In this document: positions 37,401 through 40,908 of the stretch, in pieces | Layout: each line of letters begins with the position of its first letter | How positions within the stretch are numbered: the first letter of the stretch is position 1 | Source of the DNA: Bugula neritina | Taxonomy: Eukaryota > Animalia > Bryozoa | Direction of reading: 5' to 3' | Length of the DNA: 64,000 nucleotides | Assembly: GCA_964035545.1 (NCBI GenBank) | Contig: OZ037768.1 | Span: forward strand, 8,030,741-8,094,740 | Notes under the pieces: generated by a model | The model's input: the letters and a program-made list of their open reading frames with translations, nothing else | Database searches by the model: none | What the model was told of the DNA's origin: nothing | Made by a program: the position numbers and the translations under genes

Positions 37401-40400
37401 GACAATCATAGCATTCTCTCAAAGTTTAGTTTTAGTATGATATTCAGTATAACTTCAATATTATTAAGATGTACTTTATAGAGGAAGAGTGTGACTGTGG
37501 CCTACCAGAGTATTGTCAGAGTAATTGTTGTGATCCAACAACATGTAAACTACACAGTAATGCTACATGTGCTACAGGTAAATAATTATCTCAGCTCACT
37601 ACTGATATGCTGACTATATCAATATCACAGTATGGTGATGATTAAGAATTCCTTGCTAAGTGCTTTATTTATCCACCATATTGTCTCACACAGGATCCTG
37701 CTGTGACCTTGAGACATGTACTGTTCGTCCAATCTCATACCCATGTCGTCCAGTACAAGATTCACAGTGTGATCTGCTTGAAACATGTGACGGGGATAGT
37801 GAATGGTGTCCCATAGACACATACAAACGTGATGGAACTGAGTGTACAAACGTAGAACAAGGCTATTGCTATGAAGGGAAATGTAATACCCACAGTTCTC
37901 AGTGCCAGCTCATTTGGGGTGTGGAGAATGGAGCTAAGAAGTCAGATGATGTCTGCTACGTGAAAAGCAACAATGCCAGTATGATAGATTTATACTTTTA
38001 GAAAAAAACCTCTCTATTGACTACCATAAATACAAAGCAGTATCATGTGTTCAGCCTTGAAAAATGATTTCTGTTACAAAAAAACCAATAATTACAGTGA
38101 TATAGATTATATACTCTTTGTTGTGTTTTAATAGAGCTTTGTATTTATTACCAATTGCGGCTCAAATCATATACTTTTTGTATAATAGTTTATCGGCTGA
38201 CTGCCATAAATGACAAAACAGTCATGCGCATACTCTTGGAAAATTTTTAGTTGGTACTCATTATACATAAACTAATACTTAAAATCACAAAACAGTAAAA
38301 TTTTCTCAATATTAATGGTCTCAAAATTCAACTGGTTCTAGAAACCAACATATTTTACATAACATTAATGGTGTGTATACAATATCAAGTTTATCATACA
38401 ATATATTTTTAAGAAAGAAAATTAATCAAAGCATTTGTTCTGCATGTATAGTTTTAATAATAGGCATGCATCTCAGCTCAAACAAGTCATTATTTTCTGT
38501 TTGAGTACAGTGACTTATTTTTTAGATTGACGCTTTTAAGTGTAATAATATTGCCACAAAACCACTTTAGGTGCCTATTATGGAAATTGTGGGTGGGAAA
38601 CTAAAGCACAAGCTTCTCTCGCAACCACAGTAAACTATGTAAAAGAGACGTATAAAAGCTGTGAAACAGAAAATGACAAGTTTTGTGGATTGTTACACTG
38701 CCACATTAATGCTGAATCTGAAAATGATGTGTATGATGTGAAACTAAAAATTGCAAACTTGCAGCTGCTAAAATATCTACGTATACGTGAAGAAAAAAAG
38801 TGCGCTATGGCCTCTTTCAATGTTGGTAAGAATAACCTCAAGTTTTATTATTAAAAATCTTTTGAAGATTTTATTGCCTAAACTGCATGAACTTTGTACA
38901 GAGTGTGTGTGAACAAAAAGAAGCTTTTGTGCATGTATGTGTATAGCTCACATTCAATTTGATTATGACCAGAATATATCCCCTTAAAAAATTTTAAGCT
39001 ATTTTTTCAAATAATTGTTGGCAACTTGCATTGTTTTATATTTGTTGTATACATAAAAAGTTGAGTTGAAATACATAAGAATTACTATTTAGAAAAAAGA
39101 TTATCTTATTTGCATGCAGCATAAGTGCAATCTTTTAAGTTGGAATTATTTAATTCTCATGCTTTGCTTTCATAACTTGTGATAGATCTGACTGTAAATT
39201 TTATTCCTTTAGATTTATATGCACATGATCCTGGCCAGGTGCCAAATGGTGCAAAATGTGCTACCAACAGTATGTGTGACAACTCCAAGTGTGTACCTGT
39301 ACCCCAACAACCTGAGTCATGTGACTGTAATGGTAGAGGTGTCTGTAACCAGCTCAATCAATGTCATTGTGACATCGGCTGGGCTCCTCCTAATTGTGAA
39401 TATCAAATAGTTGATATTTCCACATCAACAAGTTAGTTTGAAAATGGCTTAATGCATTTGTGATTACTTAAAATTTTGACATTTTGAAGTTTTGACAGCT
39501 TATTGCTAGTTCAGGAACTGCATTCAGCACTGCAAAATAATGCCTTACTGGGAATCGAACCCATTACCCTATAACCTTTATTGAGAACTCCCAACATCGT
39601 AAGTACTCTTTGACATGGGAAAAACAGACAATATGCTAAAAATTAAGATGTATGTAAATTATATTGCTGTGTTAAATTTTGTCTAGACATGTTGTGTGTC
39701 TGTGTGTGCACGTGTGTGTGCACGTGTGTGCCTGTGCACGTGTGTGTGTGCACGTGTGTGCACGTGTGTGCCCGTGTGTGTGTGTGCCCGTGTGTGTGTG
39801 TGTGTGTGTGTGTGTGTGTGTGTGTGTGTGTGTGTGTGTGTGTGTGTGTGTGTGTGTGTGTGTGTGTGTGTGTGTGTGTGTGTGTGTGTGTGTGTGTGTG
39901 TGTGTGTGTGTGTGTGTGTGTGTGTGTGTGTGTGTGTGTGTGTGTGTGTGTGTGTGTGTGTGTGTGTGTGTGCGTGTGAAATAAACTGTCAGTTATCAGC
40001 TTGTATTTCAACATACTGTGAGTTTGAATATAATACAATTAGACCATGCTATTCTATTTGTCTTTATATAGGTAGCAGTTCGACTACAACTAACAGTGGA
40101 AGTTTCCAATCAGCCACAATAAATCAAGAAAAAACGACTACTACAGTACCCACATCTTCACTCCATACTTCAGATACTCCAGTATCTCCAAGTTAGTAAC
40201 CACAATCTTCACTTTTTGAGAAGTTAATAAGATAACCAATTGCTAGAATTGAGATATAAACTATATTGCTTGCATGTGTGGTGACTATAAACTGTAGAAA
40301 TAGGTGATTCTGTTTCATTTGTTTCAGGTACCAGTCCGACTACAACTAAACGAGAATATTTCACATTCACAACAATAAGTCAAAAAAAATCTGCTGCTAC

Positions 40401-40908
40401 AGTATCTACAACATCACTTCATACTACAACTACTCCAGTATCTCCTAGTAAGTTATTTCAATCATTAGTTTCTGAGAAGTTAATAACACAACCAATACTA
40501 AAATTGAGATGTAAGTTATGTTACTTGCATGCACGGTGACTACATACTGTAGAATTAGGAAATGTTGTTTCATTTGTTTCAGGTAGCAGTTTGACTATAA
40601 CTAACCGAGAGGATTTCGAAGCCACAACAATAAGTCAAATAAAGAATACTCCTACAGTATCTACTTCTTCACTTCATACTTTGACTACTCCAGTATCTTC
40701 CAGTTCAGTCAAGGTCAATGAGGGTACGACACCCTCTAAGTCAAAGAGCTCTACTTATAAATCTCATGGAACACATTCTACAATGATGGCAAATACTACA
40801 GATTCAATAAGAGAGAAAGCTGAAATAGCAAATTCTGGTTCTTCACCAACTCCCTACTTTAAGCTAGAATGGTTCACCGTAGGAATTGTGCTCATGGTTT
40901 TTAAGTAA
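34409..40908 (+). CDS. ADAM metalloprotease, tandem copy 4, with Ser/Thr-rich mucin-like stalk and hydrophobic GPI-signal-like C-terminus instead of TM plus cytoplasmic tail
   Basis: Exons 34409-35726, 36584-36736, 37482-37577, 37694-37978, 38571-38825, 39213-39431, 40072-40191, 40328-40447, 40583-40908. [11 protein letters not shown] and CIM. EGF exon diverges after GWAPP. Three phase-1 S/T-rich exons follow, ending ...[26 protein letters not shown], with AATAAA motifs just downstream. Confidence 0.88.
36177..36218. repeat. (TTGGTTTGA)n short tandem repeat
   Basis: About four 9-bp units. Confidence 0.85.
39693..39978. repeat. (TG)n microsatellite with degenerate GTGTGCAC 5' part
   Basis: Direct read. 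Confidence 0.97.
40060..40705 (+). repeat. Tandem ~256-bp exon+intron duplication (three exon units)
   Basis: Exon starts at 40072, 40328 and 40583; both exons and the intervening introns are mutually similar. Confidence 0.9.

Follow-up and report, generated by a model that had tools for sequence, protein, structure and literature searches.

An ADAM gene of the bryozoan Bugula neritina with a candidate Ser/Thr-rich terminal cassette in place of transmembrane and cytoplasmic exons

By definition ADAMs are type I membrane proteins, whose transmembrane (TM) segment and cytoplasmic tail serve to regulate sheddase activity. ADAM bodies have repeatedly lost their TM and cytoplasmic exons in evolution, often in tandem arrays; anchorless ADAMs include ADAMDEC1, the soluble splice forms ADAM9-S, ADAM12-S and ADAM28s, and the snake-venom metalloproteinases. 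Here we describe an ADAM gene in a stretch of 64,000 nucleotides from Bugula neritina (contig OZ037768.1, positions 8,030,741 to 8,094,740), referred to as the window. The window contains six ADAM copies, labeled c1 to c6 in order, and a seventh gene, c0, lies upstream of it; the gene of interest is c4, which was copy 4 in an initial annotation of the same DNA. Our preferred reading, to which we assign a probability of about 0.6, is that c4 is an intact ADAM gene that ends in a Ser/Thr-rich cassette instead of TM and cytoplasmic exons. The phase-1 donor at 39431 would be spliced to three phase-1 exons, which would add ~180 Ser/Thr-rich residues, probably O-glycosylated and disordered, ending in a short hydrophobic C-terminus. 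The product would be extracellular and would have no cytoplasmic tail, being either anchored by glycosylphosphatidylinositol (GPI) or simply secreted.

Compared with the canonical type I TM ADAMs (family M12B), c4 is the same through its epidermal growth factor (EGF) domain, including the HExxHxxGxxH zinc motif and the Met-turn, whereas both c4 and c0 are without a TM or cytoplasmic exon and have instead a predicted Ser/Thr-rich tail that closes with a few hydrophobic residues. The anchorless ADAMs resemble c4 in that the TM and cytoplasmic exons are gone from the ADAM body; however, they end soon after the cysteine-rich/EGF region with short unique tails, and we know of no anchorless ADAM in which tandem exons encode a long Ser/Thr stalk and the C-terminus forms a hydrophobic signal. 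The mucin-like stalks of GPI proteins such as CD24 and DAF are likewise Ser/Thr-rich, repeat-built and fast-evolving spacers before an anchor signal, but the c4 tail is low in proline (4-8%) relative to the classical proline/threonine/serine (PTS) type and shares no sequence homology with them, and its O-glycosylation is a prediction. A language-model search for look-alikes gave scores that were all below 0.85; CD24, at 0.78, was non-significant and is not counted as evidence.

A second comparison is with the membrane-type matrix metalloproteinases (MMPs), among which mammalian MMP17 and MMP25 are GPI-anchored. In Drosophila, Mmp1-PC and Mmp2 have been found to be GPI-anchored by release with phosphatidylinositol-specific phospholipase C and by Triton X-114 partitioning, and the Mmp1 isoforms differ only in their C-terminal exons (PMC5353688). 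The parallel with the array would be that one metzincin family has TM- and GPI-anchored members or isoforms that differ in C-terminal exons. The differences are that the MMPs belong to family M10 and not M12B, that the C-termini of the array reside on paralogs and not on splice isoforms, and that a GPI anchor would here be deduced from a sequence pattern. In the literature searched, no natural GPI-anchored ADAM is described, apart from a passing phrase in a review. If c4 is one, the ADAM family would have the same TM-versus-GPI split as the membrane-type MMPs, and array paralogs differing only in the anchoring module (two with the Ser/Thr stalk, five with TM and tail) would be a natural experiment on the anchor's contribution. 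What is well supported is a gene-structure variant in a little-studied phylum, short of a demonstrated new anchoring mode.

The c4 gene and the break at position 39390

The window is AT-rich animal DNA (GC content 0.30-0.44). A search for HExGH identifies six large open reading frames (ORFs) on the + strand, starting at 863, 10200, 25123, 34394, 42721 and 51980, each coding for a reprolysin domain preceded by an apparent signal peptide and a propeptide. By a genome-wide search with the EGF exon, the family consists of exactly seven genes, c0 to c6, in one array, and the closest database protein is "ADAM28" of Bugula neritina, with 67% identity. Five of the seven genes (c1, c2, c3, c5 and c6) have a clear TM exon followed by two tail exons; the TM exons, located by tblastn with sibling exons, are at 7123-7254, 21282-21410, 31432-31566, 47965-48084 and 59268-59384. 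The other two, c4 and c0, have the Ser/Thr tail.

The available evidence supports c4 as a complete ADAM from the propeptide through the reprolysin, disintegrin, cysteine-rich and EGF domains. Exon 1, within the ORF at 34394-35746, opens with 18 residues that by inspection resemble a signal peptide. It matches Pfam Reprolysin (PF01421, E=9.8e-36) and, in the propeptide, Pep_M12B_propep (PF01562, 25.4 bits against a cut-off of 23.7), and the zinc motif and the CIM Met-turn are both intact. A KCGT motif occurs in every copy and may be a working cysteine switch. Blastn against the siblings gives homology blocks for the middle exons at approximately 36586-36741, 37462-37610, 37680-37985 and 38576-38850, and Pfam identifies Disintegrin (PF00200) and ADAM_CR (PF08516) on the exon ORFs 37436-37582 and 37660-37998. 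The EGF exon is recognized by EGF_2 (PF07974) on 39212-39433, with all six EGF cysteines present. Every exon ORF of c4 is open, and the gene may encode a catalytically active protease, which would be uncoupled from cytoplasmic regulation.

The resemblance to the sibling genes ends abruptly. In a blastn comparison of 34000-42500 with the window, the alignments of all five siblings in the window to c4 stop at exactly 39390. After the shared GWAPP, the siblings continue for 28 residues to a phase-1 donor; c4 continues for 13 residues and a split Ser codon to the donor GTTAGT, a type (GTTAG) that is found elsewhere within the c4 gene as well. The novel sequence, 39391-39431, comprises the 13 codons and the first base of the split Ser codon, retains the sixth EGF cysteine, and is common only to c0 and to the c0 ortholog described below. 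The junction at 39390 is not an assembly join, because a read-derived unitig from the sole public run that contains this DNA spans 39358-39439 with zero differences; its depth across the break is close to that of the c4-unique flanks. Beyond the break, tblastn with the TM and tail exons of the siblings gives no match in 39432-42700 after c4, nor after c0, whereas it is positive in c1, c2, c3, c5 and c6.

Everything that the initial annotation had described from the letters of the sequence is thus borne out: the zinc motif of copy 4 is intact; copy 4 follows its siblings through the EGF domain to GWAPP and then passes into unrelated sequence; a new phase-1 donor, two 120-nt Ser/Thr-rich exons and a third, related terminal exon follow, with coordinates, frames and AG/GT edges that check out; and no TM or tail exon lies between copy 4 and copy 5.

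A Ser/Thr-rich cassette and its origin

The three tail exons of c4 are each open in one frame only, have AG/GT edges and are all phase 1. They form three exon+intron units of ~256 bp with 75-79% mutual identity, the first 120 nt of the terminal exon being the third copy of the repeat unit, and they have no homology to any other part of the ADAM genes. Across the gene copies, the Ser+Thr fraction is 0.51-0.61 in the internal tail exons and 0.36-0.41 in the terminal exons, with proline at only 4-8%. The earlier description of the tail as a mucin stalk holds for its composition and repeat structure, but not in the sense of the classical proline-rich PTS type. The first tail intron of c4 is enlarged by a c4-specific insertion of 400+ nt and by a GT-rich microsatellite of ~285 nt at 39693-39978, within the c4-specific part of the intron. 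The second half of the microsatellite is pure (GT)n, and there is no counterpart in the introns of c0 or of the second B. neritina assembly; ARAGORN found no tRNA in the insertion.

Whole-genome DNA and protein searches locate a second copy of the cassette 6 kb upstream of the window, where it forms the tail of c0. Exon 1 of c0 lies at window-relative positions -12191 to -10866, contains the zinc motif HELGHALGLTH and matches PF01421 with E=4.3e-36. The c0 EGF exon has the same novel ending and the same gttagt donor as c4, beyond which come an intron of 216 nt, a single Ser/Thr exon of 123 nt and a terminal exon that ends in NSGSPSTSFYFKLEWFVLVIVLKYFE. The tail cassettes of c4 and c0 are about 77-92% identical in nucleotide sequence. 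A third copy was found in our comparison genome, B. neritina assembly GCA_010799875.2, whose orthologous introns are ~88-89% identical to those of the present genome. There the c0 ortholog, Bn0, is on contig L010, with the cassette locus at 7505-8536: an EGF exon (7505-7724) with the novel ending, then a Ser/Thr exon of 141 nt and a terminal exon that ends in NSGSSSTHLMITKSLYFRLEWFALVIVLMVFE, with a TM-type gene next in line. The frames of Bn0 are open, its AG/GT sites are kept, and its C-terminus reads WFALVIVLMVFE. Apparent replacement of the TM and tail exons by a Ser/Thr exon cassette, in three copies and two genomes, is therefore well supported. A c4 ortholog was not found in GCA_010799875.2, where the five contigs covered (L010, L011, L012, L015 and L016) end too early.

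With regard to the origin of the tail, the initial annotation had proposed that it was built by exon recruitment, and had pointed to a genome search as the way to find the donor of the Ser/Thr exons. That search, conducted at both the DNA and protein levels, matches only c4 and c0 and reveals no donor gene elsewhere in the genome, on which ground recruitment from another gene is rejected. Moreover, because the tail is common to c0 and B. neritina GCA_010799875.2, it was not built in c4.

The alignments instead describe a mosaic. In exon 1, c4 is 73-79% identical in protein sequence to the array bodies c1-c5, and c0 is 37% identical to all of them. Within the EGF exon, however, a stretch of ~120 nt is identical or one base off in all seven copies and in the second B. 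neritina assembly, in the same genes whose exon 1 differs by up to 63% in protein; the stretch looks like either a gene-conversion (concerted evolution) hot spot or a site of unusually strong constraint at the DNA level. Upstream of it c4 resembles c3, and downstream of 39390 it resembles c0. The likeness to c0 extends into the intergenic DNA, since the DNA past c4 together with the head of c5 is colinear with that past c0 together with the head of c1. By alignment, then, the block formed by the c4 tail and the c5 head is a paralog of the c0 tail and the c1 head. The 5′ ends of the genes are of two unrelated kinds, an MLCHNLY type in c1 and c5 and an MRLG(V/H)C type in c2, c3 and c4, and from about 42850 onward identity among all copies returns to 95-100%; the array genes are thus mosaics at their 5′ ends as well.

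Both edges of the block lie in homogenized coding sequence, a hallmark of unequal crossing-over or gene conversion rather than of the recruitment of foreign exons. In its sequence c4 is a mosaic of a c1-c5-type body and a c0-type tail, and it is probably a recombinant: recombination or gene conversion inside the near-identical EGF exon would have joined a protease body of the c1-c5 type to a tail of the c0 type, and one exon+intron unit would later have been duplicated in c4, or lost in c0. The cassette probably grew by duplication of an exon+intron unit, of which c4 carries one more than c0 and Bn0 do. We suggest that the locus illustrates a concrete route for exchanging a C-terminal module, namely a crossover in an exon that is held identical by concerted evolution.

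Coding status, anchoring and competing explanations

Several features support the conclusion that in all three copies (c4, c0 and Bn0) the Ser/Thr exons behave like coding exons. The frame is open through three exons in c4 and through two each in c0 and Bn0, with splice dinucleotides at the ORF edges of every copy. All four indels inside the tail exons (3, 3, 18 and 18 nt) are in frame, whereas of the 14 indels in the neighboring introns and flanks only 4 are multiples of three (hypergeometric p ~0.02). Among the possible substitutions approximately 3.5% would introduce a stop, yet none arose over roughly 100 estimated substitutions, an outcome with a chance of ~3%. Stop-to-stop segments that reach 122 codons are also uncommon, with 26 among 8755 in the window. 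On these grounds we consider it likely that the tail is spliced onto c4.

There are a number of observations that weigh against this conclusion. Two of the four in-frame indels fall within ACT-type repeats, where slippage favors multiples of three. The ratio of nonsynonymous to synonymous substitution rates (dN/dS), which is 0.16-0.25 for the EGF exon, is 0.8-1.1 for the tail exons between c4 and c0 and 0.3-0.8 between c0 and Bn0, and the identity of the tail exons is not above that of the introns; the amino-acid sequence is therefore barely constrained. The stalk may be selected for composition and frame only, but the same pattern is also expected under weak or absent constraint. Three nucleotides into the first tail intron there is a TAG stop, so that translation of an unspliced mRNA would yield a short secreted product. 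Among public runs no RNA run with this stretch was found, and the sole matching run, which is not recorded as RNA, covers the introns at unique-copy depth and so behaves as DNA. No gene model covers the cassette in the B. neritina annotation, a fragmentary one in which single exons are called as genes. Finally, the terminal exon of c4 has no match among 1.84 billion protein representatives and that of Bn0 has none among 5.8 billion clusters, although the length window and the 50% clustering give these negatives little bearing on longer proteins; a 31-nt stretch that c4, c0 and Bn0 have in common likewise gave 0 matches in JGI metagenomes.

These points bear on three alternatives to a spliced, functional tail. 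It is conceivable, though unlikely, that the donor at 39431 is unused, and that translation reads through to the TAG at 39434-39436 to give a soluble ADAM ending in ...DISTSTS, with the Ser/Thr ORFs untranslated or non-functional. Consistent with this are the stop right at the start of the intron in all three copies, the absence of the cassette from any transcript or annotated protein, and its near-neutral amino-acid evolution. However, the TAG belongs to the GTTAGT donor and its conservation is therefore uninformative, while three to four long ORFs are open in the sole frame that fits the phase-1 donor, with exons of exactly 120 and 120 nt, AG/GT at the ORF edges, and exon indels that are all in frame across the three copies; in addition, spliced and unspliced forms could coexist as isoforms. 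A young pseudogene is less probable still. Under this explanation unequal recombination in the array would have left c4 as a by-product that is silent or in decay, and c0 alone would work, in keeping with the chimeric nature of c4, the insertion and long microsatellite in its first tail intron, and the lack of expression evidence. Yet the exons are open and the catalytic motif, domains and splice sites intact; exon 1 has diverged by 21-27% in protein from its nearest paralogs with zero stops, and the extra Ser/Thr unit holds its frame and length despite ~25% divergence. The idea that the Ser/Thr exons are a separate small gene between c4 and c5 would account for their lack of homology to the rest of the ADAM genes, but is highly improbable. 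The EGF exon is only 202-217 nt from the first Ser/Thr exon in c0 and Bn0, and every ATG read in the 216-nt intron of c0 meets a stop within about 20 codons, so that there is no usable start and a separate gene is very unlikely. Furthermore, there is no signal-peptide exon, all of the exons are phase 1 like the ADAM donor, and the cassette is found only behind ADAM EGF exons.

Returning to the preferred reading, in which c4 is an intact ADAM gene with a translated Ser/Thr tail, the manner in which the protein ends can be considered. A GPI signal is laid out as small residues at the omega site, a spacer and a hydrophobic tail. The C-termini of c4, c0 and Bn0 each have a small-residue cluster (NSG/GSS), a spacer ending in YF[KR]LE and a terminal hydrophobic run; in c4 the order, by inspection, is A-N-S-G-S-S and then PTPYFKLE. 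The c4 C-terminus thus appears to match the general layout, which makes a GPI signal plausible, but weakly so. The 11-residue hydrophobic end of c4 is too short to span the bilayer as a TM helix. Derivation of this end from a truncated TM exon of the siblings was also considered and rejected, as DNA and protein alignments are not above shuffled controls save for one borderline pair of 30.

There are also specific points against an anchor. The run is short in c4, at 11 residues, and is closed by a charged residue (K); in Bn0 it is WFALVIVLMVF, 11 residues, followed by E; and in c0, where M-V became K-Y, only eight residues are left, WFVLVIVL and then KYFE (WFVLVIVLKYFE). At 8-11 residues, these runs only just reach, or fall short of, the usual minimum for the hydrophobic tail of a GPI signal. 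In Bn0, moreover, an 18-nt insertion has lengthened the spacer to 14-17 residues. Nested within the preferred reading, therefore, is the possibility that the tail is translated and no GPI anchor is attached, which would give a secreted ADAM with a mucin-like extension whose hydrophobic end is incidental or loosely membrane-associated. The short, charge-terminated runs, the longer spacer of Bn0 and the dN/dS of ~0.8-1.1 for the terminal exon all speak for such a product; on the other side, all three copies keep NSG/GSS, YF[KR]LEW and the hydrophobic run exactly at the C-terminus, a pattern for which a secreted protein has no use, and we hold this possibility to be somewhat doubtful. GPI anchoring would be roughly an even bet if the tail is translated, and is less likely than not when all readings are considered. 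The broader proposal of a natural GPI-anchored ADAM, in which a portable module of stalk and GPI signal has been transferred among widely divergent protease bodies via recombination within the EGF exon, is more speculative. Expression, O-glycosylation, activity and GPI anchoring of the c4 product are all predictions from the genomic sequence.

Feature coordinates and other observations

Table 1. Positions of c4 features and of the sibling regions used for comparison (window numbering)
Feature	Position	Strand	Description
c4 exon 1: putative signal peptide, propeptide, reprolysin domain	34409-35726	+	ORF, Pfam; donor position inferred
c4 middle exons: end of protease, disintegrin, cysteine-rich domains	36584-38850	+	Sibling homology, Pfam; boundaries approximate
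c4 EGF exon	39213-39431	+	Blastn, Pfam EGF_2; phase-1 donor GTTAGT at 39432
Near-identical EGF stretch	39270-39390 (c4); 6652-6772, 20944-21064, 30989-31109, 47519-47639, 58270-58390 (equivalents)		
Tail intron 1	39432-40071	+	640 nt in c4 vs 216 nt in c0
Ser/Thr exon 1	40072-40191	+	120 nt, phase 1-1, 54% Ser+Thr; extra unit, c4 only
Ser/Thr exon 2	40328-40447	+	120 nt, phase 1-1, 51% Ser+Thr; matches the 123-nt exon of c0 and the 141-nt exon of Bn0
Terminal exon	40583-40908	+	107 whole codons and stop (40906-40908), 36% Ser+Thr
GPI-signal-like C-terminus	40828-40905	+	NSG/GSS, spacer of 8-10 residues, hydrophobic run of 11 residues and K; by inspection
AATAAA polyadenylation-type hexamer	40939-40944	+	31 nt past the stop codon
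5′ head regions	42571-42850, 755-1040 (MLCHNLY) vs 34400-34560, 25130-25300, 10210-10370 (MRLG)		
TM exon of sibling c3, for contrast	31432-31566	+	Tblastn; c4 without equivalent

Other features of the array were noted in passing. The apparent cytoplasmic tail exon of c6, at 60212-60583, is proline-rich with repeated PPxP/KPxP motifs; it resembles the SH3-binding tails of ADAMs and differs from the short basic tails of c1-c5. In c2, homology to the other copies skips ~5.5 kb of GC-richer DNA (GC content 0.41-0.44) inside an intron, at 13416-18956. An intron of c3 contains, at ~28370-28500, a minisatellite of six copies of 21 nt, the minus strand of which is an open Ser/Thr-rich frame. The intergenic region between c3 and c4 includes a 61-nt near-perfect palindrome (33902-33962; 98% self-complementary), and a short (AC)n tract is located near the end of the window, at 63814-63882.

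Related sequences were seen in other data sets. The same ADAM gene pair is present on two B. neritina contigs, VXIV02002701.1 (5024-6326) and VXIV02000486.1 (9227-10543); in one of these, exon 1 aligns as three pieces in different frames, which suggests haplotigs or errors of a draft assembly. The environmental ENA metagenome assemblies ERZ4903326 and ERZ27264081 contain fragments of this ADAM family, one with 86% and one with 68% protein identity, and bryozoan DNA is therefore present in those samples. The contigs are genomic and not cDNA.

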